Assembly: GCF_052425735.1 (NCBI RefSeq)
Contig: NC_135764.1
Span: 18,786,001-18,850,000, forward strand
DNA length: 64,000 bases
Origin: Oculina patagonica
Lineage: Eukaryota
Direction of reading: 5' to 3'
Each line of letters starts with the position of its first letter. Position 1 is the first letter of the stretch. The notes under the pieces are model-generated. The model was given only the letters and a program-made list of their open reading frames with translations. It had not been told where the DNA came from and did not search any database. This document shows positions 1,606-29,134 of the stretch, in pieces. The position numbers and the translations under genes are program-made.

Positions 1606-4600
1606 TCACTTTAAAGCTTCCACTTTAAACTCGATACACGGATAGCAAAATGGTCCAACATTCTCTACCGGTACACTGTCATCATCTCCCGTCACTTTTG
1701 TCTCCAAGGCAACCGTACAATTTCTCAGCAACACTACCAGTAAAACCTTCATGAAGGTGTCAGCCACGCGGTATCCCATGCACCTTCGCGGGCCAATACC
1801 AAAGCGACACAAACTTTTACGCATGCTCGGTGTTTCTTCGTCGAATCGTCGAGGATTGAAAGTTTCGGTATCGCCCCAGACTCCTGTGTTACTGTTCACT
1901 GCACTGTTGTCAACTGATACTTCAACCTGAAGGGAAGAAAGTTAGAACATACAACTTGTAAGTCTAATGCAAGGGAAAACACCATAGTTTTATCTTACCA
2001 GCAAAAGCAACCGTGTTTACCGTATCTACTGGAATAAGCGCCGCGGCGCTTATTAAATTTTTCGCTCCTCAAGTGCGGCGCTTATTTGAGGGCGGCGCTT
2101 ATTTAAAATTTGGACGCCACAAAGAATTTAACAGAAGTTAAAAATAGCGTCTTTTGATTGTCAGTATTTGTCTCTTGCTAAAGAGGGAAGTGGCGCTAGC
2201 TGTCCTGGCAAAGTTCGCGGCCTTCGCAACATTTACAGAACTACGTATTATAAGAACGTTGGATAGAAAAACTAATGGGCGAGCGGTAAAACTTATCACA
2301 TTTAACTGCAAGACATCGCTTTTGGTGGAAAAAAATGTCCAATTTTGTTTTAGAGTTGCCCTGTTGTGCTGTTTTTTCGACTATTTTGCTTGTTTACAAG
2401 CAAAAGTAGGAGATTAGGAGTGGTGTGGGCAAAATTTGGAACTCTCAAGGGACTTTTTTAATTTCTCAAGGGACTGTTTTAATTTCTCAAGGGATTTCTT
2501 TCCGCTCAGTGGGCGATGAAAGGGTCTCTTATTATTACTGCGTCAACACTTGCAAGCTCGTGTTAAAGACGTGACTTGTCACATATTCCGGTGTAGGTGA
2601 TGAAAGGGTCTCTCATTAGTATTGCGTCAACACTTGCGGGTTCAAATTGCGGCCTCGTGAAAAAGCATTAAAAACGCTAACAAAATTACAGAATTCAGAC
2701 TACTACAGAGAACCTTGAAAGAAACTTTGTTTAGAATTTATTTTTAGTTTGGATGAAGTCAAGAAATGTGTTGACAAGCGGCAGAGTATCGAAATTTTTC
2801 GCACCGTGCTGTACTGCACGGCAGAAATAATTATCCACATGTTCATGTTGAAAGCGAAGTTTTAATTTGAGCAGCCGGCTTTTGAAGTCAATTGTACACT
2901 AAATGGATTTACCGATCGTTCAAAAAATTACATCCAAGTTCATAGCAATAACAGTACATTACCATTTCGTTCTCAAAAGACTTGAGAAGCCGCAATTGGT
3001 CCTTGTTTAACTCCGTGATTTGAATTCAAAACGCATTTGTAAGCACCATTACACCATATCTTCGCGGCGGTGGAAGGAAAGATAAATCCTTCATCAACAA
3101 GGTTTCAGCACTCTGTACTCCATGGTTTTCCGTTTTAAGGCCACTTTAAAATTCTATAGTGTTTCTCCTTTCCGTTTTAAGTCCCAAATATGGTTTTTTT
3201 TCTTGTTCAGAATCAAAACAAGGCCTTGGAAGTTTGTAAATACAACCCGCGCGGCTCTACGATTTCCTTGTACGATTTCAATGCACGGAATAATACGAAA
3301 AACCTTCTTCTAGGACCCCAAGAGTTCTCTAAAAATATGCGCAGAAAACAGATTTTGATTGGTTTATTTGCCGTTATTATCTATAGAACAATACAAGAAC
3401 CAAAAAAACTCCAGGGAGGGTGGGAAAGGGCATATTCCGCTGTAGGTGATGAAAGGGTCTCTCATTAGTATTGCGTAAACACTTGCGGGTTCAAATTGCG
3501 GCGGCGTGGATTGAAGATTACTGTAATTTTTGCATACGCAAGCCAAATCGGTCATAAACTGTTTAAAAACGTTTTGTTCTTTGTATTAAAAGGAAAGTTC
3601 TTGGAGAGTGCGTTTTATCCAGTAGTACCAAGTTATCAGTACAAAGATACGCACGTTAATGCTTTAGTTTGGCAAGAGTGAAGTTAATGAAATAACATAA
3701 ACGGATACAAATTCCAGTGGTTTTTAACTGTTGCGGAGTGGAGTGGTTTTCAACGGTTTACGAAGTTTAAAGGAGCAATAGAGCTCTATCTACTGCTCAA
3801 TAAATTTGTTTTCAATAGCACTGAACTTGACAGTTGTCATAAACTTTTCTTCACCGTTGGAAGAATTCACTCTGGAAAAGAGACAGATGTTCAGTGGAGC
3901 AAGAGAGTTACCTTGAGTGCTAAGTGAGTACAATCTTGCGTTGATGTTGTTTGTATGAATGTGTCATGTGGTACAGATGTTTTATCGATAAAGTTATCGC
4001 TACATGGTTTCGCTTTTAGTCTTGGAATTTGAAGTATTTCCGCACTGCGGATGGTAAGCGAGTGGGGAAACGTCAACGCAGTTGCAGTATCTGGCAATTC
4101 TCATTTATGCTCGTGATTTTTGCCATCAGTAACTGGTTAACTCATTTGCCATCGTTTGCCAAAACGTACAATTTTTAAAGTGCTACGCTTTTCGTTCTTT
4201 TTTTTCTCTCACTTCTGTTATGTTCAATTTTTTTTAACACGTGTTTTCTTTTGTTCTGCCGTGTTTATTTATAGCCGTTTACGCTATTCCGTTGTCTTAG
4301 TTGTTATCAATGCTGACACACCCCTTGACACACCAGTTGAGATAAAATTCTCCCGTTATATGCTAAGCTGCGCTAAAGAAGTTTTTTTTCTTTTTAGAGA
4401 GATAAGCTACCACTTCCCTTATTCCATTTCTACGGTATGATACATTCTATGAATTTTTGGTATGGCAGTTTTAGTATTTAATCCTGAATTTCCTACTGTG
4501 CGATTAAGTAAGTCGCTAACAGGCTCGTTAGTATGTTTTCGTGAGCGATGCTTTTGAATTTACACAATGGACGCACAGCAAGATAAAACGAATTTCCGGT

Positions 4601-7600
4601 AATTGTTTGAGTACATAGGTGGTGGAAAACACGGATCCTGCTTCCCAAAATCCGTAACCGGGTTTACATTACGTTTTTGACGTAGGGTATAAGCAAGCCC
4701 GACAGTTTATAAATTTCAGTTAGAAACTAAACAGATGAAGTCTTCTTTTTAAGTTATCACCCAAGATTTTATTCTTTCTTATAATTTGAAACAGATTTTT
4801 GGTCTAATTAATTAGACCGTAAATCGCCAAAATTATTTTAATTCGCGTTACTTGCGTTCTCCTCCAAATTTGGTATACAGGAAGTGAATTTTATCCGCCA
4901 ATTACCTAGTGATTCCGGCCAAGAAACTTTAATGTGCCTTACATGACGATTTTTGCAGAAGTTATTCCTTCAGCAATATGGCGGTTTCGGCCCCCCCAAA
5001 TAATCATTACCTTAAATTGACGTATTTTTAATTGAAATGGTTCTTTGTTTTGGTAGCTGTTGTTGCCACTTTTTAAAATGTTTCACACTTCTGCGTTTTA
5101 CAAAATTCACACATACTGCGTTTTAAGAAAATACGTCAATGCGCATTTTACAATGTTCCTCCCATCAACCGTACCGTTCCACCGTTCCTACATTCCTCAT
5201 AATAAACTAACCAGAATATCCAGGACAACACAAATTTACATATTTCAACACTTGCACTCCTAAACAAAGTGAAAAGCCTAATTCACCCTTTAAAAAGAAC
5301 TACTCCATACCACAATTGACTGCCAACAGATAAACCATAGCAAAATAGTCGTAGTCTCACAGAGACCTTTGATTAGTTGAACGCAATTCCTCGAATAAAC
5401 GCCGCATCGGGACTGCGGCGCTTATTCGGGGGCGGCGCTTATTAACTTTTTTGTCCCAAATGCGGCGCTTATTTGAGGGCGGCGCTTATTCGAGTAAATA
5501 CGGTATGTTGGATACTCAAATAAATCAACTGAATTTGGTACAAAGGAAAGGAACTTAAACAAAACTTGAATTATTCTCTAGATTCTTTGAGCACTCATTA
5601 CCAGTCCTGGTTAGAACTACTAATTTACACAACAAGCCAAAGGTTCTTACCCCTGGGGGACTGTGAAAATTCCCGATTACCATTGGACAAGTAACATATT
5701 CCGGGGTACTGATCACCATCACGGGTCGTTTTCTGGCCGATTCCTTTACCACCTTACCCAGGAAATCCATTCTGTTGAGAGCGTCTAAACTCAAAGGTCC
5801 TGAAAGCTAAAGGAAAGTGGCATGCATTATTAGATTTTAAACGCAGTTTTATCGTACAGGGATAAAATAAATCAATGCGTCAGCTGGGCTAAAAACGATA
5901 ATACTTACAGCCTAAATACCGTACTAGATCTAAACAGAGAACGTACTTGATTCAGTTGATTGCCGCGTGCTGAAAGTTGAAACTATTTCTAATAAACTTG
6001 CATAATACGGTCACCCTTTTAACTAATGTGGCCACTTTCTGTTACTCTTTTGGCAGCCGTATTGCTTTAAACTAGCATCTGTTGGTTGTTCGTGTGGAAT
6101 AAAGCAGATACAAAACAATATTGTGTTTTCAGGAACTAGGTTTAGGAAAGCTCAGATTTCAACGACAAACCCTATTTCATAGGCTCGATTTACAGTCGCT
6201 TTTCGGGAGGAAAAGGCGGCGGAAATCAGTGATTACATCTAGTCCGCCTTATATGCGGGGGGCCGAGGTTCAATACCTCGCCGGGTAACCTCACATAGTA
6301 TATCTCGATATTAGACAATTACTCACTTTATACAACAGTTCTTTGTAGTTACCCTATGTCAGATCACCTGGGTTACCAACAATTACAATAATCCCAGTAG
6401 AATCTCCTTGGATTTTTAGCTATAATAGCGAACTACTTACTGGTGAAGTCGAGTCCTTGATCTCAGCTGTTAGTTCCTTCTGAACGTCTTGATGAAGAGC
6501 CACGTGAAACAGAAGCCAGGCTGTGGCACCGCACGTGATATCTACATTAGCAAGTGACGCTTCTTCCAGGGTTTCTTGAAACTAGAAATGAACAAAATGC
6601 CTCTTAGATGCCATTAAACTAAACTAGAAACAGGGTGAGATTCATACTAGCAATACAACAATGTTGGACTTAGCTAGGAAGGTGGGTGGAGTTAGTAAAA
6701 AGATTTGGCCTGGCTTGGATTGAAATTGATGAAATGCTGAGATGAAAGTCTCCTACGACCTAAAATAGCTGACATTCACACGTAACTACCTCTTCTTGTG
6801 ATACAACTCCAGGATTTTTAACAAGAGTTTGTTGGATCTTGTAAAAAGCACAGCTCGTGTCTTGCATCTTCCCCGCTGTAAACCGCTCTTCAAAACTAAG
6901 GATAATAAGAGACTGGGTTAGAGCGGTGGAGATCATAACAATATTAGAAACCAAAGCAAATACAAACTTAATCGTTTTATACCAAAATGTTGTATGAGAT
7001 CGATGATAAGTGAAGGAATAGTGAAGTAGAGGTAGAACAAGGCGGAATATTATTGGTCTTGTATTTCATTCCGTTGGCTGAAAACACGATATCAATACCC
7101 TGGGTGATGTTTAGAGGCAAAAACGTATATCCGTCATTACTTATCTTCAAAAATTATATAAAAAACTGCCTTTGAGCCTTTGAGGTTATAGCGAGGTGAT
7201 CACGGCTGTTTGCTCGTGATCAACTACGTTATTGCATTATTCAACATGCAGCAACAAACTTCAGAATAAAGATAGAAATACAAGAAAAAAGATACAAAGG
7301 ATTTGCTTACCATTTATTGAACTGCAGCCACCTTCTTTCAAACTCCGCCAATCTCTTGTTTGTGTTGGTAGGTAAGTATTTGTAAAATGGGAATTTAACA
7401 AGAGGGTTTGTGAAGGTATCGGCGATAAGAGTTCCTACCAGCGCTCTTAGATCAATCAACTCTTGTAGCTCCTCTTCAGTAACATCTCTGCCGTATGTGA
7501 ACTTCATTAGCATTCTAAACGTCAGGAGAATCAGATCATCCATGGTAATGACACCCTGAAATGAAAGAGTATTAAAGCAATGTCTAAGCGAACGATCGGT

Positions 7601-10600
7601 CGCCTTTGGATTACATGAGAGATCAAGTTATTTTGCTAGAGCACTATGTTCCAACATTAAATCAGCCAACCAGCCAACCCTTCTGTCTGCCCGTCCATCA
7701 ATCATTCATTCAGTCAGTCAGCCCACCGGCCAGGCAGCTAGCCAGCCAGTCAGTCAGCCAGCNNNNNNNNNNNNNNNNNNNNNNNNNNNNNNNNNNNNNN
7801 NNNNNNNNNNNNNNNNNNNNNNNNNNNNNNNNNNNNNNNNNNNNNNNNNNNNNNNNNNNNNNNNNNNNNNNNNNNNNNNNNNNNNNNNNNNNNTATGTTC
7901 TCACATTTCTAAGGTTGATGTAAGGTACATATATTTAAGTGAGAACGAGAGGATTAAGTACCTACTTAGAGCTGACAATGAACATACATCAAAAGTAGTA
8001 GGTAAATATATACATTCAATGTTTCAAAAAAGGAAAGAGCTTCTTAACTTACAAGCACAATGAACATTATAATTTTTTAATTTTTACATATATTGACATT
8101 ATGAATTGTATAAGAATCAAATATTTGTTATTTCTTAAATGTATTAGTAAATGCTAAAACCTTTGTTGTAAACAGACCAATACCTCCCTTTGGAGAGTAA
8201 GGCGCAATAAAGATATACTATTACTATTACTATTAATCAGTCAGTCAGTCAGTCAGTCAGACAGACAGTCAGTCAGTCAGTCAGTCAGTCAGTCATCGAT
8301 CAGTCAAAATACTATAAAGCATTTGCATGTAGCTTGTATACAAGTTCCTGATCAGTTACTGATACCTTTTTCTCTTCCACGATTAGTCGTAAGTACTGTT
8401 TACATTCCTGTTCCATCATATCCACAGTCCGTGTCACGCTCTCTGTACTGTAACACCCATCAAAGGTACTGCGTATGCGCTTGTGTGCGTCACCGCTGGC
8501 CGTGCCAGCTGCCTTACCAAACAGCTGACGAAACACACTGCCGAGTCGGAAGTCCTTCAGTCTCTCATACTTGTGTTGTTTGGACATAAACTTGACAGCG
8601 ATTTGTGGATCGGAGATTATGCTGTTGAAAACAATAATAATAAAAAAACACACATAAATGCTACTCAATTTCTTTGCTGAATGAACTGTTACTGACACCG
8701 ATGTCATCTTTCATCGCTCGATTTTCTTCAACCTCAACAACTACAGAAACAACAACAACAACAGCAATAAGACCAATTACAGACTTTCAGCGGGCATGCA
8801 AAACATCACAAAGTCACTTTTTTGTCATTAGGTGATACAATATATATTCGCAGCGTTCCCTGACATTACACAAAACACAGTGGCAAATTCCGGCAAAAAT
8901 TGTCGTAAAACTCATGATGTAGCATTTCGTTTGGCATAACACGTTGTAACTATTTTTTAGCTTCGTCGTAAAAAGAAAGGCTCTTTCCTCCTCTACCTTT
9001 TCATATTAGCTGAGGTTGCCGAAGAAGGTCACAGAAAAAATTGGCAAAATTCAAAATGCTCTTAGACTGCGGGGTACGTGGAGAAATTGCAGAATTCGCG
9101 AGCACATTCCCTGCGGCTACGTGATTCCCACGCCTCGCGAGCACATTCCCTGCGGCTACGTGATTCCCACGCCTCGCGAGCACATTCCCTGCGGCTACGT
9201 GATTCCCACGCCTCGCGAGCACATTCCCTGCGGCTGCGTGATTCCCACGCCTCGCGAGCACATTCCCTGCGGCTACGTGATTCCCACGCCTCGCGAGCAC
9301 ATTCCCTGCGGCTGCGTGATTCCCATGCCTCGCGAGCACATTCCCTGCGGCTACGTGATTCCCACGCCTCGCGAGCACATTCCCTGCGGCTACGTGATTC
9401 CCACGCCTCGCGATTTCTCTGCTTGCGATTTTCTGGCACGATTTTTTTCGTGGGAACACAAATCACGCCCGACCAATGGAAAAAAAAAACGAAAAAAAAA
9501 AAGCCTTCGTGTACATTACGTATAAATTCTAACTGAAAATAGGAAAATTAACAAAGCAAACATTACCAAGCCAAGTAAACATTACTTTGTACTTACAGTT
9601 TTGGAGGACCGGGTAAAAATCGGAGCAAGTACATTCCGAATTTCTTCAAGCTGTCATCTTTCATTGCGATTAATGTTGGTGAAAACGTTTTAAATCCAGT
9701 TCCTTTAATTACTTCACCAGAATCATTTTTCCAGAAGTAAACCTGAAAGTAAGAATTACAAAACGTAATATAAAACCATCTTCGTTTCTTTTTCGGTGCA
9801 TAAATCGGGGAAGTCCTTAGATTTCTTAGACTATAACCGACCCGATTTTTGTAAAATAGATAAATAAATAACCTTTATTTAGACACGGTGAGGATTAGAG
9901 CTAAAAGCTTGTGGGGTCGTGTCTACCCGATCGAATTGGAATTTGGAAGTCTAATATTTAATTAAAATATATTTAAATATTTCTCACGAAATATTCAGCA
10001 CACTTGCCCCGGGGTGGGATAAAAACAGAAGGCAAATGCCCCACTTTCGGGCTCATCGTGCAAAGAAAACTGCTCAAGACTCACAAGGGGGTCAAATGTC
10101 CCCGTGGGTAGGCAAATGCCCAGCCCCATAATCTCCTTCGCAGTCGTTGTTTCGGAAGCGTTGCGTGACATCCCCCCAACACACAAAAAGCCTGCGAGCA
10201 ATACCCCAGGGCAGCAATAAAATGAGACACTCCCCCGGGATTAATCGGAGAGCAAATTCCCGGCTTATGCCAGTGGGGGTGGGGGGGGGGAGTTGATAGG
10301 CAGCGCCATAAGTTATAATTTTTAAATATTTCTATGTCGTATCGCTCTTGAAGAGCACGGTACCGAATAATTAATGCGGTATCCAGGTTAGTTCACTCTT
10401 TTCTGCCCAGATAACGGAGATCTTTATACTAATTGGGTCGTGAATCAAATTATCCATTCGCACGAATCGAACTTGCACCTGGGTCACTGTTGTCACTAAA
10501 GAGATCCAGGGAAGAGATGCAGAACTTTTCGGATAGACAACACTGCCTTTCGACTCGAGCTCGTTATTAACATTATCCATTTGACGAATCGATCGAATTG

Positions 10601-10832
10601 GCAGGCACTGCTTTCACGGTAGTCGGAAATGAGATGCAATTTTCCGATCGACAACGAATAGAAATTTCTCTTTTCGGGTCGAATCCAGTGGACAGAATGC
10701 CATGGTGAATGACGCCAAGTTCAAACTCTCTAAGCGAAATACAGTTACACCTACCTCTGATATTTGTTTGTAAATCCACAATAATGAAACTAACAAGATA
10801 GTTAGGACAGCGAGGACAAGGCTAACAATCAT
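1606..10832 (-). CDS. Cytochrome P450, ~482 aa, 8 exons (10832-10755, 9742-9597, 8621-8366, 7555-7311, 6895-6790, 6581-6441, 5806-5651, 1926-1606); membrane-anchored, GliC-like by motif recall
   Basis: All introns are GT-AG and the phases are consistent (1449 nt total). N-terminal anchor MIVSLVLAVLTILLVSLLWIY, I-helix ETLEEASLANVDITCG, K-helix ESAR, PERF-like FNPRRF, heme motif FGIGPRRCMG (1774-1803). Confidence 0.93.
2020..5503. mobile_element. Non-autonomous Tc1/mariner/pogo-type DNA transposon (~3.5 kb) in the last P450 intron
   Basis: TA|ccgtatctactggaataagcgcc at the left end and ggcgcttattcgagtaaatacgg|TA at the right. Repeated subterminal gcggcgcttatt motifs. No transposase ORF seen. 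Confidence 0.8.
7700..8305. repeat. (TCAG/CCAG)n microsatellites and an assembly gap (N run 7763-7893) in P450 intron 3
   Basis: Seen directly at about 7700-7762 and 8237-8305. Confidence 0.9.
9096..9413. repeat. 39-bp minisatellite, 8 near-identical copies, in P450 intron 2
   Basis: Unit tcgcgagcacattccctgcggctacgtgattcccacgcc in head-to-tail tandem, with no spacers. Confidence 0.95.
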
Positions 10833-16124: not shown

Positions 16125-19100
16125 TTAACTATGCTCATCATGATCCTCATGGCTTCTCTGTACATATCCGGAAACATGTTTAAGTCTCTTGTCATGAGGA
16201 GTCATTAGCCCTTGTTCTACAGAGCCAGCTAATGTGTCTTCCAGTGAGGATGTCCGTCTATTCTCGGGTAAAAGCGGGATTTCCTCTGGCTCAGGTGGAC
16301 GGTACAGGTACAAAAACAGGATGATCCCCAGCAGGGTTAGTCCAGCGGAGCCCATGAACAGAAGCTCCCATCCCTGAATTGATAACTCGGCTTTGCTGAG
16401 GAGTGGAGCGATCACTTTGCCGGCCGACATTGCAGCAATACAGTAAGGCATTATGACCGGCTGGAGGAGAAAAACAAATGACACAAAATTATAAATACTT
16501 TTAAAAACATGCAAAGAGATCAGTCGTTTGATGAGCTACCCCGTTTGTTGCACGTTAAGAGAGGGGTGGTGGTGGTGGGGGGAGTAATGCCTAACATATC
16601 CCAATACTTTCGTTTCCTCATCAAAAGCAATGCCTTTTCAAACAAGCAAGTAACAAGAATAGAAAATTTATCACACGTTCCTAAGATGCTTTGTTTTTTG
16701 AATATATATGCGCTGCACGCGAAAGGGAGAGATGTCGGAGTCAGGTCGTTAGCAAAGCTACTGAATAGAGAAGATGCCGAGTTTTTCTCATTCTGGGAAG
16801 CTGTCACAAGCAAATCAACTAATATGGGTGTGATTGCCTACAGCAGGCTCTTTATGAACGGTTTGTTCTTACCATCATTGACTTGGCCACATATTTAGTC
16901 GTCAGTGAAGGTAATATTACTCCAGCAACGGAATACGTTAAAAACACCATGATTGCCCCACCAATGAAAAGAGCTTCCTTAACTGGAACTCGCAATGTAT
17001 TTAGAACCTGAAAAAATGAATGAAAGGTAGAAATAACATTGATTTTGTGAACGATAACCACAAATCAGAGATCAAGCATGTTGAACCCGGCCACTGTTCT
17101 CTTGTCCTAATAGAAGTAGGGGTGGGACTCCGTTTTTGAGAGCAGATGCTGATATAATGGGACATTACATTAAAACAACCAGAAGAGGAAAAGAAGTAAC
17201 TCCCAAAAAGGTACGAGAAAGAGCGTCATTTAAAACGCTTCAAATTTGAGGTATTACAGACACCCAGGATTACAGAGCTTAGGTATGGGATAAATCATGC
17301 TTTCCTCTGAAAATATGATAAAGAGAGCAGTACAATCCCATCAAAACGTTTGAGTAATTTTATCCCTTACTCGGATAGATAACAAGGATAAGTGTTAATG
17401 TCCTACATTGTGGAGACAGAACGGTATACATTTTCCATCACGACAGGCAAACATTGAATTAAGGAATTTTGACTCAAGAAATAAAACATTTCGCACTCAC
17501 TGAAGGTCCACCGAGATATGAAATCCCTATTGCGATGATCATGAACATGTAACAGACTGTAAGGACTCTTCTGTCGCCATGTTTATTGTTAGTCATACAC
17601 TTGGCTTTAGACATGAACGCCATGGTAAGCGCGGCTACTGTAGCTGTTCCTGAGACGCCCACCATCAACCAACCGTACTGCCAGACTTTAAAGTGGAAAT
17701 GGTTGTAAGCGACCAATGGCAGCACAAAGCCAACCCATGTGGTTATGAAGCCATTCAAAAGGTACAGCATCAAGCCCAAGAGAACACCACGTGACTTGAG
17801 TGAGCGTGCCACTGACACGCCATCGTCAGTGTCCCCTTAAAGAGAGTTCATGGAGTCACCATTTTTAGGGTCATTGTGCCTCTTAGAGAGGGTGAAAAGT
17901 TAAAAATTTCATTTAACTGCGAAATAAACCTACAGTAAACACCACAGTGTTCCGACTGACTGCGTTTCAAGGGGAGGGGCTTAACAGGCACGGCCAGGGG
18001 AAGAGGGGAGGGGGGAGGGGGAAGGGAGGAGTGGGATACCAATATATCTCATTTCTTTCCCCTGGGATACCAATATACCTTAAAAATGCAACAACGTCGT
18101 TAAAAGATACCTCAAATTGTTGAAATATAGAATACCCTATACCTGAAAATTTTTACAAAAAATACTGAATACCTTGGTAAAACACCCTAGATACTGTATA
18201 CCCCAAACCCCTGGCCGGGCCAGGCTTATGGTGCGTGTTTCTAAGGTAAGACCCTAAATCCGTAGGAGAAGCTAACAGAGGGAATGCGGTATTTCCTAAA
18301 TCATTTATAGCACCATCTTCTACCTTGCGAAAACGTGGAGTGTTTTTCTTTTATAACAACATATCCTTGTATGAAAATATTACTTAATGTTACTATATTT
18401 ACACGCAACTGTAATCAGAGTTGCACTATTTCTGGTTCCTCTGCGTTGTAGGATTATTTTTCTCTTTTCTCTTCTTATTACAGAATTTTTCAGTTTTCAC
18501 AATTCCAATCGTGTGTCCCCTAGCATGACGTTTGTCAATCAAAGTCATGCCATAGTCGTGCAACAAGACCAGCTAAGTCTCTGTCACCGAGCCAATCAAC
18601 TAACAACTCAATCAACTTACCAATTGGAGAACAGTCCTTTTCATCCAGAACAAACGTGACTAAGATTAAACAGATGCATAAGAACAGGATGGTGAGAGCA
18701 GCTGGAGCGGAGAACTCGTCGAGTCCTGTTGCTTTACCGAGAGCATTCTTACTAAAGTTGGGTAAAAACGTCGCTGATGCTGTGAGAAAAAAAAGCCAGG
18801 AATAAAGATTAGATTTTACCCAAGCCTTGATGACGATCCGGGGAGGGGGGAGGGGTTGCTAAGGCATTGATGCTGCTGCTAATTGCAATGTCAAAAGAAG
18901 ACAAAAATACTAAAACTCGCAACGAAGACGTCATTTTAATGATGGTATTAGTAATGTTTTCATCAACAGACAGGTCAATATTTGTTGTGGATGGACTTAC
19001 CAATCGTAGATGACATCACTCCAACCATGCACGTCACTCTGTAGTAAGACATGAATTTTGTGCGGGATTCTCGACTGGTGTTGGCGCCGATAAAACCATA

Positions 19101-20489
19101 AGCAACTCCTCCGCTACCTGGAAACAAAACAGGACAATCAGGAAATGAAGGTTTTATGTTGGCCACAAAGCTGGTCACATGGTTTTTAAAAGAGAACAAT
19201 TCTTTCGGTATTGTTGGATACAGGGGTAATCTTAATTATCCTTGTTATATGCTTATTGCTTTAAAATTACACAAGATCCTTTAACATCAATACTTTCGAG
19301 ACTCTTAGACTTTAATCTCAACGAATCATTCCCTTTTGCTCATTGGGGGCTGCCAGGAAAAATCTTGTTTCTTTTTTTCGCGGGAAATGACAGTTGACCA
19401 TCACAAAACAAATAATTAGTCGATTCTCTCACCTGCGCCGAAGCCAGCCAAAGCTCTTCCCAGAATAATCAGCACAACTGAGTTAGCTTTGTGTGCAGCC
19501 ATGTATGTCACGTTTCCACCAATAGCGATTATAAGAGAAGCTATAAGAACAATCTTGATCTGACACAGTTTCTTAACAAGCAGGCTGGCTACTGGCTGAG
19601 AAATTCCCTGTCCCAAGGGAAATAGACTCTGCGCCAAGGAGAGGTAAACTGCGGCAGAAGACGTTGTCTTAGATAGCTGAAGAGAGTCAAGAAAAGCTCG
19701 TTAGCCTACTTTCGAACCCCACCCAGGGGCTTTATAGGCTCGATTTCTGCTGCTCTTTCGGGCTCGCTTTTCCCGAACAGGGGCTGATATATGAGCCTAG
19801 GGGTTTTACCAATCTAGAGGAGGGATCCCCCTTTGTAGATTCATGCAGTTGACGTTTCGAGCGGGGGTCAGCGAAGGATTTGACAAATGGAGAACGCATG
19901 AAACACTGTAAACACCACCATCCTATCGGAAGAAGCGTTTGTAAGATTGTGATGGTTTGTGAGCAGTTTAAAATATCAAGCTTGTCTTGAAATATATGTT
20001 TTCTAAAAGACTATGTAACAGCTGTTATGCATTTAAACGTTAACAGTGTTATGTTCAAAACGCGAGCGGAAACAGAGCAAGAAATATTCATGTTTCGGTT
20101 CCAAAGACTTCATCGTCAACTGGCTGACATATCGTTTCAAGATCGATTTTGTTTGCCTAGCTAGAGATGCCTGTTTTCAATAAATTTAATTACAGTTTCT
20201 AACTCGGAGAACTCATTAAGCAACTGGCCAGCAGATTTTTAAAGGATAGATTATTATTTAAACGTGGAAAATCATTTCCGGTTTCATTATATTTGATTTC
20301 ACGGTGATTTCGATACTCGTGTTTGTGAAATAAATAAATAATAAAAGAAATAAAATTCATACCTTGAATGAAAGATATACTTACAGAAAGGATGTATGGG
20401 TATATTGAAGTCATAACTACGGCCCATTCCAGATAATTAACAAAGCCAACCAGTAGAACCACGGCAATGTTCGTTTTGCTCAATGCCAT
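16125..20489 (-). CDS. Major facilitator superfamily transporter (MFSD8/CLN7-like), ~476 aa, 7 exons (20489-20385, 19676-19433, 19117-19001, 18779-18621, 17835-17501, 17007-16873, 16460-16125)
   Basis: Many hydrophobic helices; TM1 FVNYLEWAVVMTSIYPYI; motif ILGRALAGFGAG; AYGFIGANTSRESRTKFMS. Splice phases are consistent (1431 nt). Confidence 0.88.
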
Positions 20490-20943
20490 ATCGAAGGCTG
20501 CGAATGTTGCTTTCAGTAATGGAATAAATATTTGCTGTCGATAACAAGCTTTGACAAGGAAACTTGTTCAAAGATAAACAGCGAAATGTTCCTTTCACGG
20601 CTTGAGCTTGTTTTATGTGCCTCTTGCAAAATGAAGGAACTCTTCAAAATAGATTTTGAAATACATTACTCTTACAAGCGCGTGACGTGACGTCATTGGC
20701 GCTGTATCTGAAAGGGAATACCCGCTTCGTCTTGTGACTTTCGGGGAATACTTCCGGTTTCAAGGCCAGTGTGACTTCAACGTTGCACAATCGTTTTTCT
20801 CCGAATTTAGGGGTGTGAAATCCATGTCAGTTCTCTTTATAGATTAATTAGTACGGACTTTCCCTTTTCTATGCTTATAGCCCAGTGAAAACGAAACTTT
20901 GAAACAATGAAGTTCAAACCCTGCTAGAGATCGGTCAGGCACA
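20490..20943. promoter_or_regulatory. Short bidirectional promoter between the MFS and acyltransferase-fold genes
   Basis: About 450 bp between divergent ATGs. TGACGTCA at 20688, TGTGACTT at 20733 and 20770, kB-like GGGAATACCC at 20714 and CGGACTTTCC at 20854. Confidence 0.5.
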
Positions 20944-23900
20944 ATGCACCGATTATCGAGTCCTCGCTCTGTCTTCACAAGAGTGTTTTATTATCGGAAC
21001 AGTTTCCCTTCCTCGCTGCTATGTGCAGCAACAAAACCCGCAGAGCATCTCATAGAGGAAGAGGCTAACCGCATCACAAAGGATATCAAGGCAAGCCTTT
21101 CATTTTTTTGAGCATTGAGACCACAGTGTGGCTGTGGCTTGAGACCATAGTTGATCGAGGATAGAAATCAACATTAATTTCATATTGACCAGGAAAAATA
21201 ATTTTAATTAATAATTCTTTAAAAAGGTTCAAGGTAAAGCCAACCTACAGTACCTTTGCTTCCGAATGCAAGCAGACTTCCGCTTCGTGTAAATCGGTAC
21301 TCGAATACGGTACTCGATGACTCTCTTCCGAATGGGGATGATTTTATTGTTTCATAATTGTTGTGCGTGGCAAACACAAATCACCACGTGCAAGTTCTGT
21401 AACGCTGTTGAATTGGGTGGTGTTTCTGTTAAAAAGAACTTGGTTTCTGCCTTCAAAATTTATTTGGAAAGTAGTGCTTTAAAAGATTCTCGATTCATCG
21501 ATAGGAAAAGAAGAAATAGCAAAGAGGGCCTCTCAAGAGGGGGGGGGGGGGGGGAAACCATGTTCCTTTGTTCCCAACAAAATTTTCCTTGTGTTCCCGT
21601 GTTCCCTAAGAGTTTTTTTTTTCGATGAAGTCTTTACAAATGAGAATGTGACAATGCGCGTATGAAATAAATCAGCAATTGTGTGAACTGTGGATAATCA
21701 ACCCAAGTGACGCAGTGGTGACGTCGTAAACTCAACATTAACCCTGTTCTCATAAGCTCTTGACGTCCTGAACAGCTGTTACTGACGCACAAATGATATC
21801 AGGTGGCCAAATTCTGCTAAACTGAACTACACACGGAAAACCTATTAATTTCACGGGGCAAAACAGGATTTTCTGGCGTAATAAATTTAAGTATGACCTT
21901 CGCGGCACTGAGCTATCTTTCAAAAAATTTAGCCCTAATAAGGCCAATAGCTATAAAAACCCTCTCCCCCCAACCTGCAAAATCAATGTCCGAAAAAGAA
22001 AAGTTACGTTGTAATAAAAACTTCAAATATTCTACTAGTCACAGGAAGCGTTGGGAAAACCAGACTTGCAGAAGAGAGTACTGAAGTGGGATGAAAAGTT
22101 GCCAATTCCTGACCCTCCCCCACTGAAGAGTCTCTTGGACTTTTTAGTCCGAAGGCGAACACTGTCTTGTTCAAGTGGTTTGCAGCTTGGTTTGAACAAG
22201 CTTCTTGTTCGATCTGCTATCCGTGTCTTGGGACTTCAACGTGCACATGAAAGGTGAACGAGAAAAAAACTTGTAATATCTAGACTGGTGACACAGTAAA
22301 TAGTTCTTTTATATTTAAAACTGGTCCCTTGAGAAACAAATATATTTTTTTCGGGGGATGGAGCTAGGGGAAACGTCGAGATTCGAGGGAAAAAATTGAT
22401 TGGTTTCCCGACTTTAGAAGAACGGAGCTCGAGGCCGTCGGTCAACATTCGCGGATCGCGGTGTACTGTTACCCTCTGACGTCATAGATTTTGCAATGTA
22501 ACCCGCTCAGAGACTTTTGGCGGGAAAAAGTTTTGTTGTTGGAGGAAAAAACTCATGCTTTTCTATTCCAATGCCATTTATCTCCTAGATTTTCTTAAAA
22601 GGGCGTAGGACAAGTGAGGTTATAGGCCGCAACCTTGAAATGTGCAAGTTTACGCAATTATTATGCATTGTAAATTTATGTGACTGCATGTGTGAAATAA
22701 ATGTTATCTTTTATAGAAAACAATTATCTTATTATCCCCAAAGTCCTCTCAGGCTTTCAGTCTCACTTCTTTTTCCTCGTTCACCAAAGGTTAAACACAT
22801 TATTTTCTCTTGGTTTTAACGCATACTAATATATTGTTTTCTTCTGGCCTTAGAATGTGTGAACAGCACTCAAGCGACACTGTACACAACTGTTGGTATG
22901 CGCCAGCCAATCACGGCGACACATTTGGTATCCGCCATGATGAAATATACTTCCACGAAGACATTATTCCTTCACAGCCTGTGACGTCATATGCTGTGCT
23001 GATCCGGGGGAGCCCAGGTAATCCTGGGACATCAGTTGATGGCGGCATTGGAGAAAACGAGAGTTCACTAAATGTTGCTTCGATAAACAACCCAGATGTC
23101 ATGGTTGACCGTGCCGCCTCTCTTGTAGATGGACTCATCATGAAAGCCAGGGATTTTTACATGAGCAGTGAATTTAACCAAGATGTGATCAAGAAGACAC
23201 CACTCTCTATGCAGTGGTATAATTACATCTTTTCGTGCTCTATGCAGTTTCTCCCAGGTTCCATTGAGCGCTACAAGGCCCCTGCAGGTCACTCAAGGCA
23301 CATCATTGTGATGATGCGTGGTAACATGTACAAAATGGATCTTATATACAGCAATGAAGACGGACAAGAGAAGAGAATCACAGGCAATGAACTAAAAGTA
23401 AGTAAAGTAAAACTTAAAGGAGAAGTTCACTCCAGAATGGTCATTTATTTTTTATTTTAAGATATGTTATTCACCAAAATTTTAGCCTCCAACGTTCGCT
23501 ATAACCCTATGAAATCTTTTGCAAAACGCGACAACTGAACGCCGCCATCTTGGAGCTGGTAATGTATGCGTGACGTCAAAGAGCTCAGCCTGAAGTTCGG
23601 AGGGAAAATTTTAATAGTCGAAACTCCTTGTTTTTTGTATTTCATGGAGCTCTGTTTGAGCAAAATGAAGCTGCACAAACAGGCATTTTGTCAAACAAAA
23701 GCCACTACGAAGAAACAAATAGTTCCGAGTATTTATATTTTAAAGTAAGCACTTGTAGATACACATACATACATGTATATAGTATGTAGTGAGTCCAGTT
23801 CACTAATAAACATAATTATATTTATATTTTCCCGCCAAACTTCAGGCTGAGCTCTTTGACGTCATGCATACATTACCAGCTCCAAGATGGCGGCGTTCAG

Positions 23901-26589
23901 TTGTCGAGTTTTGGGAAAGATTTCGTATAACCTGCGTAGCAGAGCGTCGAAAGGGGAGGGAGGGGGAGTTGGGAAGAGGGAGAGAAAGAGAAAAAAAAAC
24001 GGAGGGGGAGTGGGGACGTTCCCTCTTCCCCCCTTCCCCTTCTTCCCCCCTCTCCCTTTCCCTCCCCTTTTTACGCCTGCCACGCAGGCTAGATTTCGTA
24101 GGGTTATAGCGCACATTGGAGGCTAAAATTTTGGTGAATAACATATCTTTGTATAAACTTTTTATTGGCGTAAAGAAAATAAATGGCCATTCTGGAGTGA
24201 ACTTCTCCTTTAAGCCACCAGAAAGATCATTACAGTATCTTTTACAAGGACACGGAGGTTCAGCTTATTTTATCTAGTTTTATCAATTTCAATTTGGAAC
24301 GTCGGCATTTACACACGCAGTTTGAGTGGTTTTCGCGCGAATACTTTCAGTTTACTGTACTTAAATGACACCTGGTACGCATGGACATGTTGGCCAGTAA
24401 GAGTTTGGCAATCACGTGCAATGGACCAGTTATAACTTGCAACTCATCTTTTATGCCCAGAATTGAACATTTTTAAAAAGGTTTTATTATTTGGCAGTGA
24501 AATAAACACCGACGCTTTCTCCAAGGAAATATTTTAGTTACATAAACCCTATGGAAGATTCTTTGGGATATTCCACAACCACCACTTATGGTCCACTTCT
24601 TTTTCTATGTTTACAGAGTCAAATGAAAGATATTTTACAAATGGACGCCTCGAGAGAACAGTCGACTCCGATAGCTGTTCTAACAAGTATGACTCCAACT
24701 GAGAGATGCCAGGAAGAACAACGCCTAAAGTGCCTCAGCGAACGAAACATCACTAATCTCTCGCTTGTCCGCGATGCCCTCTTTGTCGTCGCGCTGGACC
24801 CTGACGAATATCCACAAACAGCAAACGAAGCCATGTTCGCGCTTCATTCGGGAAACTTCGTAAACCGCTGGTATGACAAGAGCGTGCAGCTGGTTGTGTT
24901 CGGCAACGGTGTGGCGGGATTCGTTAATAACTATTTAGCAGGAATGACAGGAACAGTCGGGACAAACTTTGTGCGGATTGCTGTGAGAAATGAAAGGCTA
25001 TACCAAGAGAAGACGGTTAGCGGTAAGTAGTTGTGTAGAGAAAACAGAAACGAGACAAAAAAGAAAAAGAAAAATGGATCAGAAACTGTTACTTATGAGT
25101 GATCGAAAGAAAGAAAGGAAGAACTGATGAATTAATGAAAAATGAATGAATTTATTAATGAGTGAATGAGTGAATGAACAAGTGGTGGAATAAATGAATA
25201 AACAACACTGAGAACATGGCAAAAACTGATATAAAAGAGCGATCGTTGAAAAAAGTTTAAAATTGGTTTAAAACTGATTTTTCTTGTGTAAGTACATCCA
25301 TCTTAGATCAAATGATCATTTGCGAACTACTTAGTTGTAAAATGTCAAATGTTATTTTCACTTTCAAATATTTGATTAGATGATGAAGACAAGATCTGGC
25401 CAGAACCCTTTGCTATCAGCTGGGATGACAGTGCAGACGGATATTTCAAACAGAAGATTAACAGTGTAATCAATACCAGTCGAACATCTGGGCCCTTTAA
25501 GCCGCTGTCTCAAGACGTGTTTAAAATCTGGTCTGGCTCCAGTTTTGAGGAGATGTGTAAGGCGCATCAGGTTACCCCAGGTGGTGCCTTCCAAGCTGGA
25601 CTGCAGCTGGCGCTCGCCAAGATTGCTGGGAGATGTATGAGTGTAAATGAAGTGGTCAGCATAAGGTGAGACTTAATATAAGAAGTGGAAACTATGTTTG
25701 GAAAGGTTTTATAATAATGAAAAACGTAGTCCTAGTTTATCAAAGCCCGTTAGCTAAATGACTTAAAGTTTTCTTCCTTGTTTGCTTACAGCGGGCCTTG
25801 CTGTAAAATAACTGATTTTCATCAACTCATTTCTTTAGTTACACAAGTTTTCAGAGCTTTATTTTCCAGCCGCGTGCGATGTACGATCATTCTTTTCTAG
25901 TTCTTTTTTAAAATATTCCTCGACGTTTTTATTTTAGGATAGGTACTCAGTTTTCTTTATCTACAACATTTGATTCAACGTTTTTCTCTTCCAGGCACCT
26001 TCGGTTTGGCGGAATGACATTAATGGATAGCAGCATGGCGGACATGACGAAATTCGTCGAAGAAGCCAGCAAACCAGCACAACACAGCATTCAAGACATA
26101 AGTGAGCAGGAACGTTCGGTACTGAAAGCTCTGTTGAAGAAAGCAATTCACAGCTACAAAGACGAGGTCCTGCGTTATAAGAACGGTGAAATCAATCTGT
26201 GGCATCTAGACTCTCTTTATAGAAATCTTGGTCTGGCTAATCGTCTTCCGTTCCGAAAAACTCCACAATTTGAACTGAAGAGGAGTTTAAAAGAAGTTGT
26301 ACTGGGATATCTTAGAGCACCTAAATTCAATATACTGCCGCCCCAGGTCGCCGAAAACGTGACATCCAATCCCTGCTGGTATCCTGAAATCGAAGCTATC
26401 GGGAGGCCTGGGGTCAAGTGCATACTGCCACCAACCTCAATGGCGCTGCATTACATGTTTGGGAGAAATGCGATTTCCATCACAGTGAATGCAAATCCTG
26501 ATCATCCTTGTTATAAAAACGAGGAGGAATTTGTCAAGGTACTCGAGAAGTGTTTGCAGTTCGTCACAGCTTTGCTTGATTCAAAATAA
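20944..26589 (+). CDS. Choline/carnitine O-acyltransferase-family protein with divergent active site, ~730 aa, 6 exons (20944-21090, 22039-22253, 22854-23397, 24617-25022, 25380-25665, 25995-26589)
   Basis: Family motifs LPIPDPPPL, PLSMQWYNYIFS, SRHIIVMMRGNMYK, ALFVVALD, NRWYDKSVQLVVFGNG, FQAGLQLA. Phases are consistent (2193 nt). Exon 1 requires a GC donor (AAG|gcaagc) and is the least certain part. Confidence 0.85.
23418..24209. mobile_element. TTAA-flanked MITE (Kolobok-like) with long inverted arms and a nested insertion at about 23929-24091
   Basis: TTAA|aggagaagttcactccagaatgg ... ccattctggagtgaacttctcct|TTAA. The arms match for about 190 bp apart from the nested piece. Confidence 0.8.
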
Positions 26590-27385
26590 TAATAATGGTG
26601 ACGAAAACAGTGACACTTACAACAGTAAACTGCCACCTATTGCTTTGAAAAAAGTTTGAGCAGTTGTTTAGTTGAGTGTCAAAATTAATTTGCATTTGCT
26701 TTGATTTTGCATTACTACGCTTAGTGATCAGTTTGACCCCCGACACTTTCTCATCCAATCAGAAGTACAGCCAATCGTGACGTGTACGCTGCATGTAGTA
26801 CATGCTGCATGCATGTATCGATTCTGGTATTTACATATTAACATGTAAGGTGTTATTTGAAGCTATTTTTCGCTATTTTTTTTTCTGAGGGAGTAAACTA
26901 TTGGGAAGTACAGTCTTTCTTTTTAAAATTAATAATGACACTTCCATAATATGTTCATGCGCGCGCAAATAAAATCGTTGCTACTTCGCTTTTTTCGGTA
27001 TCTACGTCTTTGATAAAAGTCATGGTACGTTCTTTCAAATGTCTAGTGACTTATAGAACCCTCGCCTGCGGCTTAGGTATCCCCCTAACTGGGTTTTCTC
27101 TATTTCATCACGAGAAAGAAGTGACCTGAAGATTATGCAGAGGCTGTCAGAGGTAATACAAAGACATGGAAACGCAAGCTCTACTCATGTCTACTTCTTA
27201 CGTACTTGATCTAGTGAGGACAAATAAAACTGAAAACAGGCTACCGATCAATTTTACTGATTAAATTGGAAAAAGCCAGTACGTAGCTCAAAAATCGAGA
27301 GTCGCGATTTTTTGCATTTGATGCCCCAAATGTAAGTGTGATAATGTCAATAAATTTTATTTTGAATACTCGGTGCTTAACATCT

Positions 27386-27467
27386 GCTGTGATGGCCGAG
27401 TGGTTAAGGCGTTGGACTTGAAATCCAATGGGGTTTCCCCGCGCAGGTTCGAATCCTGCTCGCAGCG
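27386..27467 (+). tRNA. tRNA-Ser, anticodon UGA
   Basis: 82 nt. Acceptor stem GCTGTGA/TCGCAGC, D-arm TGGCCGAGTGGTTAAGGC, anticodon arm TTGGA-CTTGAAA-TCCAA, long variable arm GGGG-TTT-CCCC, T-loop GGTTCGAATCC, discriminator G. Confidence 0.97.
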
Positions 27468-28168
27468 TCAGCTTTGGTTCGTTTTTGTAACAAACCATGG
27501 ATTATTGGTATCTATGAACAAACTTATACGTAGCAATATATAAATAAAGAACCATGCACGAGGGGAATTCTGTGTAAAGCCTGGTTGGGACTTCGTCTTC
27601 TTATCCGGCCTTCACTTGGCGTAAATATAAGCACTTTTCTAGGAGCCGTATCGGAGATGACAAAACTTTTGTTCCACAGTGGATTAGTTCTTTCAGAAGT
27701 ACATGATCTAGTTCTTTCCCCAACAACTTTCGTTACACTGTGCGTTGCTTTGAAGCTTTCAAATAGAATAGACTTTCCGGAATACAGAAAAAAAAAAGAA
27801 AAAAAAAGATAATTATAATGTTTAACTTAATTAATAAACAAAAAATGTACGAGGCGAAGTTTAATTCGCGCGACACGAAACAGAAAGGTTCAGAACAGGC
27901 ACTAAATCCACGAAAAACAATTATTAAGTTCCTGTTCCTTTTATTTTTTAAGCAAAACAAGAGATTCCAAAGGTATAAAACAAAAAAACGGAAATTCCGA
28001 AGGAGACAGGGCAGTGCCTTTGTAGACCGGTCCTCTGTTCCCCTTTCCGGTCTCGTTTCCCGATTCCTCCTCTTCCTTGTCAGCAGCTGTGTCTGTCACG
28101 CAACGTGACGCTGGGGGAACAGTGGAGACGACCCGCTTGGACCGTATTTTAAAATCCAAGTTTGGACA

Positions 28169-28891
28169 ATGAAGATCATTTGTAATGGCGTTGGAAAAAC
28201 TGGTAGCAAATCAATCACCAAAGCTCTTCGCAATCTTGGATTTACGGTGTTTGACTGGGAAGAACAAACCTTTGACTTTCTGGATCACTGGGTCGATGTT
28301 TTCCAAAATGGCGTCAAGCCAGATGTCAAGCGAGTTTATCAGAATGCTGATGCAGCCGTGGGTCACCCTGCAAACTTCTTTTTCGAGGAAATTCTTGAAG
28401 CTTTTCCTGACTGTAAAGTTATTCTGAGTGTAAGAGAAGAAGATTCGTGGGTAAAAAGTGCTGCGAATCAAATAGAAACGACATATGCTCAACGATATCA
28501 TAAGATGTCCTTGTTATCTCCAACAGCAAGAAAGATGTATTATGTCTTGGATAGTTGTATTGACGCTGTTTTTGGTTCTCGTAATCCCAAATCCACTTAT
28601 GTTTTCAGAAAGAGATATCGTATCCACAATCACCACGTAAAGTCCACCGTTCCTGCTGACAAACTGTTAGTGTATAACGTAAAACAAGGATGGAAACCAT
28701 TGTGTGATTTCTTGGGCTGTGAGGTTCCGACAATACCCTTCCCACATGAAAATATCAAAGCCGAACTAACTTACAAAGCTTTGGAATTAAGTAGAACAGG
28801 CCGGCAGGTTAAACGGGAAATGCAGAGAGGGGTATTGGTGATCATCATGATCATTGCAGCTACATTTATGGCCATTTATTGTCATCATTAA
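28169..28891 (+). CDS. P-loop sulfotransferase-family protein (Sulfotransfer_4-like), intronless, 240 aa, C-terminal membrane anchor
   Basis: KIICNGVGKTGSKS (PAPS-binding loop equivalent), FPDCKVILSVR..DSWVKS, VPADKLLVYNVKQGWKPLCDFLG...PFPHEN, hydrophobic tail. Confidence 0.88.
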   Translation: MKIICNGVGKTGSKSITKALRNLGFTVFDWEEQTFDFLDHWVDVFQNGVKPDVKRVYQNADAAVGHPANFFFEEILEAFPDCKVILSVREEDSWVKSAANQIETTYAQRYHKMSLLSPTARKMYYVLDSCIDAVFGSRNPKSTYVFRKRYRIHNHHVKSTVPADKLLVYNVKQGWKPLCDFLGCEVPTIPFPHENIKAELTYKALELSRTGRQVKREMQRGVLVIIMIIAATFMAIYCHH

Positions 28892-29134
28892 TTAATTATA
28901 CTTGGTACAATCTCAGGGTGCAATATGTATTTTCGTTTGTTTTATATTCACTGTCATATACACCAGAAAAAAAGAGAAGTAGCTGCTTTTTTTGCGCTAA
29001 CAGCTTAAAAAATAATAATATACCGGTAGTATATTTTTCAATCCCATAATCACCTTTCTAGTTTTGATGCATTTCCATTTAGTTTTGGGAGAATCTGGCT
29101 CCGTCATTCTCATCACATGTTAACATGTAGAAAA

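Follow-up and report, generated by a model that had tools for sequence, protein, structure and literature searches.

Can a coral make a tailored cyclic dipeptide from genes of its own? Secondary-metabolite gene clusters are rare in animals, and the diketopiperazines of marine invertebrates are usually credited to microbes. The question is raised by a stretch of 64,000 nucleotides (nt) from a chromosome-scale contig of the coral Oculina patagonica (C7:18786001-18850000; genome, 529 Mb), hereafter called the window, in which a cyclodipeptide synthase (CDPS) gene lies next to a cytochrome P450 (P450) gene. The gene order is P450 (minus strand), CDPS (plus), a major facilitator superfamily (MFS) transporter (minus), a carnitine-acyltransferase-fold gene (CAT-like; plus), a tRNA-Ser(UGA) and an intronless Sulfotransfer_4 gene (SULT). 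An earlier note on this DNA had proposed that the five protein genes serve a single pathway and had counted the tRNA-Ser into the cluster. We found that the CDPS and P450 genes are intact and expressed and that their linkage is conserved among relatives and repeated elsewhere in anthozoans. The other neighbours are tied to this pair to differing degrees.

Results

The window encodes an NYH-type CDPS

Gene models were assembled by script, combining open segments with GT..AG sites and with conservation between species, and all introns are of the GT..AG type. Pfam profiles were searched on exon-sized open frames, and homology searches used exon-sized references. The CDPS gene (12235-14217, plus strand) has three exons (12235-12531, 13080-13281 and 13994-14217) and encodes an NYH-type cyclodipeptide synthase of 240 amino acids (aa), as indicated by Pfam CDPS, TIGR04539 and RNA splice joints. 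Exon 1 alone matched PF16715 with 48.8 bits (cut-off 27) and TIGR04539 with 50.7 bits (cut-off 45), and exon 3 alone reached 44.0 bits with TIGR04539, just below that cut-off. The catalytic set of the NYH signature is complete, with Ser32 and Asn35 in GMSPGN, the Y184-x3-E189 region (YYLLKE) and the Y-H pair in IYHRSW. In an alignment with the solved BtCDPS, GMSPGN was paired with GISPFN, YYLLKELAF with KYVLAELPF and IYHRSW with AYHRPW. Two proteins predicted independently in other assemblies, P0002 and P0093 (236 and 239 aa), aligned with the window protein from end to end. Judging from these sequence features, the enzyme would make a diketopiperazine from two aminoacyl-tRNAs.

P450 and CDPS are transcribed and spliced

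Sequencing runs X1, X2, X3 and X5 were treated as RNA, since their contigs skip exactly the modelled introns. Contigs crossed the P450 joints 8621|9597 and 9742|10755 on the minus strand (CT..AC) and the CDPS joints 12531|13080 and 13281|13994 on the plus strand (GT..AG). Because these four RNA joints match the models exactly, the P450 and CDPS genes are both transcribed and spliced, and transcripts of both were present in the four bulk RNA-like runs. Over 19000-28999, a share of 0.10 to 0.22 of the sampled words was present in the same runs; this share is not separable by gene and is compatible with transcription of some MFS, CAT-like or SULT exons.

The divergent start codons of P450 and CDPS are separated by about 1.4 kb (10833-12234). 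RNA contigs extend into this stretch from both genes, to 10859 from P450 and to 12157 from CDPS. Promoter-proximal blocks of this region are conserved in two orthologous loci (L035 and L007, described below), and the region is presumed to be a shared or bidirectional promoter.

In runs X2 and X3, intron 1 is kept in a CDPS contig covering 12200-13279, which also differs by a 13-base deletion at 12520 and many substitutions. Either a divergent allele, transcribed but not spliced, or some DNA in these runs would account for it.

The adjoining, divergently transcribed gene encodes a P450 with a signal anchor

The P450 gene (1606..10832, minus strand) encodes 482 aa in eight exons (10832-10755, 9742-9597, 8621-8366, 7555-7311, 6895-6790, 6581-6441, 5806-5651 and 1926-1606). 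It was identified from a Pfam p450 match on the last exon (E=1e-11), the spliced model and the RNA joints. The first exon opens with an ATG at 10832 and encodes MIVSLVLAVLTILLVSLLW, a typical microsomal N-terminal signal anchor. The motifs that define a cytochrome P450 are all present in the spliced model, namely ExxR (ESAR), a PERF-like motif (FNPRRF) and the heme loop (FGIGPRRCMG). In a motif-level reading of the alignment, the I-helix is TCGATA in the window P450 and SF(A/T)ATS in the C6-type and Actinia P450s introduced below. The acid-alcohol pair (A/G)Gx(D/E)T(T/S) is incomplete in both the window-type and the C6-type proteins, in which the threonine is kept and the acid is replaced by alanine. 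On sequence grounds we regard this alanine as a departure from the common monooxygenase motif and not as a reason for exclusion from the P450 superfamily. The best PDB matches of the heme exon were animal CYPs (1.6e-7 to 1e-3), and bacterial NCBIfam models matched it weakly; the other P450 exons and one exon of a C6 paralogue had no PDB match.

Two readings of this gene were discarded. A 430-aa model starting at 9664, seemingly without an N terminus, was rejected, as the RNA joints reveal the upstream exon 10832-10755, and the KKFG...DP segment, considered as a proline hinge, turned out to be the beta-1 region.

Intron 3 of the P450 gene (8365..7556) contains an assembly gap (N, 7763-7893), which was left unfilled. 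The exon edges that flank this intron (8621-8366 and 7555-7311) are both in phase 0. In RNA-like contigs of the four runs, loose ends at 8365 continue with letters identical to the start of exon 7555, so that transcripts splice 8366 to 7555. The orthologous P450s of L007 and L035 align across the 8366/7555 exon junction with no residues missing. Because of this RNA joint and the gapless orthologue alignments, an exon concealed in the gap was rejected, and the frame is continuous.

At 3.7 kb in the window, the last P450 intron is longer than its counterparts in L007 (about 1.1 kb) and L035 (0.6 kb), the excess being a repeat element at 2018-5504. Relatives of this repeat near TMEM245 had been reported in the earlier note. 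Within the window we found one further copy, shorter than the first, at 46.9-47.6 kb (46921-47568), in which the two ends of the element are joined. No Pfam domain was found in the open frames of the element. P450 intron 2 holds a tandem repeat of about 540 bp (9001-9540), open in several frames and with a period of about 39 bp by eye, that is absent from the orthologous L007 intron.

The P450/CDPS linkage is conserved and recurs in distant anthozoans

Orthologous P450 exons were found in L007, L035 and L008. In L007, a coral contig, P450 (minus) and CDPS (plus) stand head-to-head, with all P450 exons and the three CDPS exons at 80-90% identity (about 85% at the nt level) and introns that no longer align. 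The Desmophyllum pertusum locus (L035) has an annotated p450 (minus) directly upstream of CDPS and also a second CDPS copy. In another coral, species B (L008), the P450 gene lies on the same contig as the MFS and CAT-like genes, about 10 kb further on, and the expected CDPS interval falls outside the stretch read.

The O. patagonica genome has five CDPS loci; apart from the one in the window, all lie on C6 (35.11-35.22 Mb). Compared with the whole genome, the window P450 heme exon gave matches below 1e-8 only in the window and at two C6 places, and exon 3 (8621-8366) matched with E<1e-3 only at the same two C6 P450 genes. Both of these lie beside a CDPS gene: P450 35110462-35112775 (minus) stands head-to-head with CDPS 35116739 (plus), and CDPS 35168364 (minus) with P450 35173236-35175308 (plus). 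A partial pair consists of a P450 heme-exon remnant beside the CDPS at 35143958. Window and C6 copies share about 32% identity in CDPS and 25-37% in P450; the split is therefore old.

In a maximum-likelihood tree, the window CDPS grouped with Nematostella XP_048576831 (support 100/99), and the C6-type CDPSs of stony corals, anemones and octocorals formed a second clade (support 100/100). The tree favours neither a single nor a double origin of the two anthozoan clades among the other, presumably bacterial, sequences, and the anthozoan label of its row P0012 is to be disregarded. The intron of the C6-type genes is placed differently from those of the window CDPS, and most of their coding sequence lies in one exon.

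The C6-type arrangement was also seen outside the stony corals. In the annotation of Actinia tenebrosa (L038), a p450 (5804-9312, minus) and a CDPS (10001-10944, plus) are accompanied by a gene for a 442-aa protein (11938-13266, plus), and in the octocoral Dendronephthya gigantea (L039, 1-10977) a p450, three CDPS copies and a gene for a 436-aa protein lie together. The 442-aa Actinia protein matched Pfam Nucleoside_tran with 40.6 bits (cut-off 29.8) and is 62% identical to its Dendronephthya homologue. The same ENT-like transporter, at 63-64% aa identity, is encoded at C6 35118934-35120295, just downstream of the first C6 CDPS. By homology and gene order, a second cluster type composed of P450, CDPS and an ENT-like transporter (C6:35110000-35176000, Actinia, Dendronephthya) is conserved from octocorals to stony corals.

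The P450 complement of the genome is very large, with at least 92 matches scored among 401 candidate stretches, many of them in intronless tandem arrays (e.g., C9:5736751-5774315). With at most 401 candidates in 529 Mb, a P450 would be expected within 7 kb of a given point in about 1% of cases. In O. patagonica the two CDPS loci are mutually independent, and the C6-type arrangement is kept in two further, distant lineages, those of Actinia and Dendronephthya. Given an expectation of about 1%, two independent loci and two distant lineages, chance is not a reasonable explanation of the P450 linkage. The adjacency of P450 and CDPS is thus kept beyond chance, as the physical linkage of a biosynthetic gene cluster requires, and the microsynteny that the earlier note had proposed as a check of its cluster was found for this pair. 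The sequence comparisons argue strongly that CDPS and P450 are a unit kept together across species and ancient paralogues.

A transporter gene adjoins the CDPS

The MFS transporter gene (16128..20489, minus strand) encodes 475 aa in seven exons, as modelled from Pfam MFS_1 matches on exons and from splice sites. It lies tail-to-tail with CDPS and head-to-head with the CAT-like gene, and all its exons are conserved in L031, L036 and L037. The region from MFS through CAT-like is collinear between species B and the window (16119-26656). In L036, the tail-to-tail arrangement of CDPS and MFS is kept, the P450 side is rearranged, and the protein farnesyltransferase beta-subunit (FNTB) gene that borders our locus is inverted upstream. 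An MFS remnant is located between the two D. pertusum CDPS copies (L035).

A transporter gene was found beside CDPS in three forms: MFS in the window, ENT-like in the C6-type clusters and MatE downstream of the Nematostella orthologue. Three transporter families beside three CDPS lineages make up a pattern that would be expected of export genes in metabolite clusters. That the MFS protein takes part in the CDPS pathway, as a putative exporter, has in our estimate about an even chance.

The CAT-like protein lacks the catalytic histidine of its family

The CAT-like gene (22072-26589, plus strand) was modelled with five exons (22072-22253, 22854-23397, 24617-25022, 25380-25665 and 25995-26589) on the basis of Pfam Carn_acyltransf and an alignment with CrOT. 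Upstream of the acceptor at 22072 the frame lacks an ATG; hence the protein has at least 670 aa and a further, ATG-bearing 5' exon lies outside the model. Pfam Carn_acyltransf matched over three exons, and Atlas features for the last exon also fit the fold. Similarly to CrAT, CrOT, CPT2 and ChAT, the protein has about 670 aa, and it aligns with this family in the tunnel-forming core and around the N-terminal LP-x-P motif. The HMMER alignment with CrOT (1xmc/1xl7) ends at residue 325, and its ungapped continuation puts a tyrosine at the catalytic His327; unlike CrOT, the window protein has this tyrosine within an invariant NNYLAG loop. The catalytic motif [D/E]H[AS]xx[DE] is therefore lacking, and we refer to an acyltransferase-fold protein and not to an acyltransferase. 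Species B, D and E share without change the loop that replaces the motif, GFVNNYLAG(M/L)TGTVGTNF, even where overall identity falls to 54%, indicating that the protein is under constraint.

The CAT-like gene is single copy, with one match in the genome, and among exon-sized candidates it was seen only in coral-derived sequence. Species B, L045 and the distant species E (about 54% aa identity) have the same head-to-head MFS/CAT-like pair. L032 (12716-13319) and L040 (7616-8200) carry fragments of CDPS exons 2-3, one of them frame-shifted, some 2 kb downstream of CAT, and MFS fragments (exons 4-5) lie downstream of CAT in L041 (8830-9454). These fragments beside CAT in other corals point to repeated local duplication, decay and reshuffling with the same genes. 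On a JGI contig (L042, 2-1792), CAT-like exons run on without introns, and behind them come fragments of MFS exons that include an intron-like gap; this could be a processed copy or a transcript-derived sequence.

The sulfotransferase is variable, and the tRNA-Ser is probably a bystander

The intronless SULT gene (28169-28891, plus strand) encodes 240 aa and matched Sulfotransfer_4 (PF17784) over its full length (185 bits, cut-off 22.8; model positions 1-214 of 215). The protein has a P-loop-like motif, GVGKTGS, near its N terminus and ends in a hydrophobic tail. Sulfotransfer_4 matches in the genome number at least 52, mostly in arrays. Species B (L031) lacks the whole of segment 26656-32011, and with it tRNA-Ser and SULT, and FNTB comes directly after CAT there. 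The order CAT-SULT-FNTB was observed in L044, and SULT-FNTB in L009. Since SULT is present in L044 and L009 and missing in species B, it is older at this place than O. patagonica, yet dispensable. With so large a family, and with one related coral lacking the gene here while another has it, SULT is at best a weakly supported member of the cluster that the earlier note had proposed.

Species B has a different SULT paralogue 8 kb past the P450 gene, on its 3' side (L008, SULT 10046-10766, P450 18934-20597). It was rejected as an orthologue of the window SULT, being nearer to a C11 paralogue (91.6% versus 84.7% nt identity), and in O. patagonica this paralogue (C11:1874059-1875373) has no P450 or CDPS within 20 kb. 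The SULT near the P450 of species B reflects either a recurrent association or a coincidence in a mobile family.

The tRNA-Ser(UGA) gene (27385-27469, plus strand) was predicted by ARAGORN and scored 66.9 bits with Rfam. At least 10 copies of at least 92% identity lie elsewhere in the genome, and no tRNA-Ser was found in the ten related loci scanned. A role as a dedicated substrate supply was rejected on these grounds. It is probably an ordinary dispersed gene and a bystander of any pathway.

The locus is host DNA and is bordered by FNTB

The Pfam search placed p450 at 1606-1899 (minus), CDPS at 12235-12567 (plus), MFS_1 at 16125-16514 and 17474-17818 (both minus), Carn_acyltransf at 22810-23460 and 24551-25030 (both plus) and Sulfotransfer_4 at 28169-28891 (plus; E=2e-54), so that the five families predicted from the letters by the earlier note (CDPS, p450, MFS_1, Carn_acyltransf and Sulfotransfer_4) were all recovered in their places. 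Our models reproduced its two head-to-head pairs, P450/CDPS and MFS/acyltransferase-like, followed by tRNA-Ser and the sulfotransferase, and no unrelated gene lies between these genes. Introns are present in four of the genes, with eight exons in P450, three in CDPS, seven in MFS and at least five in CAT-like; SULT has none. That the stretch is host DNA was corroborated by the spliceosomal introns, by its location in a 33-Mb contig and by orthologues in annotated cnidarian genomes.

The right border is formed by an intronless gene at 32198-33406 (minus strand) that encodes an FNTB orthologue of 402 aa (Pfam Prenyltrans, E=6e-114; human and rat FNTB in PDB, E=1e-154). The Prenyltrans gene at 32-33 kb was considered as a diketopiperazine prenyltransferase and rejected, since its match to FNTB identifies it, by homology, as a housekeeping gene and not as a tailoring enzyme. 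The FNTB orthologue is intronless both in the window and in related corals, which is unusual for this housekeeping gene in animals.

Discussion

We consider it probable that the window holds a host-encoded, transcribed CDPS/P450 module in which the P450 oxidises or cross-links the CDPS product and the MFS protein exports or compartmentalises it. In such a module, the NYH-type CDPS would make a diketopiperazine from two aminoacyl-tRNAs. The divergently transcribed P450, which would be anchored in the endoplasmic reticulum (ER) and belong to a lineage dedicated to CDPS partners, would then oxidise or cross-link this diketopiperazine, and the transporter encoded directly downstream of CDPS would export the product or confine it to a compartment. 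The module would be one of at least two ancient anthozoan types of CDPS, P450 and transporter, the other one (C6, Actinia, Dendronephthya) using an ENT-like transporter. The action of the P450 on the CDPS product, carriage of that product by MFS and any role of CAT-like or SULT are what we infer from gene content and linkage. The CAT-like protein, with its His-to-Tyr replacement, and SULT may be accessory members.

Several observations weigh against the module. The Nematostella orthologue XP_048576831 has no P450 within 10 kb, its neighbours being an RBR E3 ligase and the MatE transporter, and L036 keeps only one P450 5' coding exon (window 9742-9597) beside CDPS and MFS. The related corals are close (75-90% in exons), and part of the shared order is thus merely inherited, while the C6 pairs are tandem duplicates and not mutually independent. 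In species E, nothing like CDPS or P450 was found in the 4.5 kb that follow MFS or the 10 kb that follow CAT, so that, at least over this span, the MFS/CAT-like pair can stand apart from the CDPS module. Finally, co-presence in bulk RNA-like runs is weak evidence, and MFS, CAT-like and SULT were seen there only as an undivided word share.

Do all the genes nevertheless form one pathway to an oxidised, acylated or sulfated diketopiperazine, as the earlier note had proposed, with tRNA-Ser as a local substrate supply? All are intact and follow one another without an unrelated gene in between, P450 and MFS-CAT share one contig collinear with the window in species B (where the expected CDPS interval was outside the stretch read), the CAT-SULT-FNTB order recurs in L044, another SULT paralogue lies 8 kb from the P450 of species B, and the invariant loop of the CAT-like protein speaks for constraint. 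However, the tRNA-Ser is multi-copy and absent from orthologous loci, SULT belongs to a large family and is missing together with the tRNA in species B, the acyltransferase histidine is a tyrosine, and the MFS/CAT-like pair of species E has neither CDPS nor P450 in the flanks seen. Moreover, neither CAT nor SULT nor MFS lies beside the C6-type clusters or the Nematostella orthologue. We consider the full cluster improbable. From the proposed single pathway the CDPS/P450 core stands and the MFS remains plausible, whereas the tRNA-Ser is incidental, the SULT is variable and the CAT-like gene, whose fold was correctly recognised, lacks the family's catalytic residue and forms its own pair with MFS.

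It is also unlikely that the locus consists of two independent divergent pairs that are neighbours only in robust-clade corals, with P450/CDPS being biosynthetic and MFS/CAT-like having another role in transport or acyl metabolism. The head-to-head MFS/CAT-like pair in species B, L045 and species E, the species E flanks and the C6-type clusters, which use another transporter and have no CAT, would agree with such independence. It is opposed by L036, which retains the CDPS-MFS adjacency despite the rearrangement on the P450 side, by the CDPS fragments beside CAT in L032 and L040, and by the transporter next to CDPS in all three cluster forms; the view beyond MFS in species E spans 4.5 kb only. 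A chance juxtaposition, in which all neighbours including the P450 are unrelated to CDPS and tailoring-like families were picked afterwards, appears highly improbable. P450 and SULT are indeed large families (at least 92 and 52 matches), and many enzyme families would be acceptable as tailoring enzymes, but the P450 lies beside CDPS at two independent loci in this genome and again in Actinia and Dendronephthya, each time against the low expectation given above, and the CDPS-adjacent P450s are each other's closest relatives. The CDPS/P450 module with a candidate MFS exporter thus remains our preferred reading. Beyond it, we would suggest only tentatively, and regard as doubtful, that anthozoans keep at least two ancient animal-encoded diketopiperazine clusters, each composed of a CDPS, a P450 of a dedicated lineage and a transporter, of which the window type, in stony corals, recruited an MFS exporter, SULT and a CAT-like protein whose His-to-Tyr active site carries out a new reaction on the diketopiperazine, the product serving defence or signalling.

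The scaffold enzymes of octocoral terpene clusters are encoded in the animal genome, with P450s beside them. The module described here resembles these octocoral systems and those of sponges in having its scaffold enzyme in an animal genome, which challenges the view of a microbial origin, and differs from terpene clusters in that the scaffold enzyme is a tRNA-dependent peptide cyclase with a different product class. For sponges, animal-encoded terpene biosynthesis has been reported (PMC9992776). In bacteria, two-gene CDPS-P450 clusters, whose P450 modifies the cyclodipeptide, include Rv2275/CYP121 (mycocyclosin), YvmC/CYP134A1 (pulcherriminic acid) and gymA/gymB (PMC2922099, PMC7954767, PMC9401060). 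Similarly to these, the NYH-type CDPS of the window adjoins a P450, the pair forms the conserved core, and transport genes are often near. Unlike in the bacterial clusters, the genes lie in an animal chromosome, have spliceosomal introns and are divergent rather than arranged in an operon, and the P450 has a eukaryote-style N-terminal signal anchor and a heme exon that is nearest to animal CYPs in PDB.

Nvec-CDPS2 of Nematostella vectensis was found to be active (Seguin et al. 2011, as cited in PMC5816076). The window CDPS, too, is an animal-encoded NYH-type enzyme with introns, and XP_048576831 is its orthologue; the window locus differs from that of XP_048576831 by the adjoining P450. PMC5816076 refers to NYH-type CDPS sequences of corals and PMC2922099 to animal CDPSs, and neither paper describes tailoring neighbours in animals. 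Likewise, a cluster of tailoring genes next to an animal CDPS was not described in any of the papers covered by our full-text search.

A CDPS/P450/transporter unit from soft to stony corals would be a second class of animal natural-product cluster, after terpenes, and the locus gives a testable route to coral metabolites. It would also be a case of a horizontally acquired bacterial-type enzyme that gained introns, a presumed bidirectional promoter and an ER-anchored P450 partner, and it draws attention to a conserved carnitine-acyltransferase-fold protein with a replaced catalytic residue. If the module works as proposed, it would be the animal, and not its microbes, that makes a tailored, exported cyclic dipeptide.

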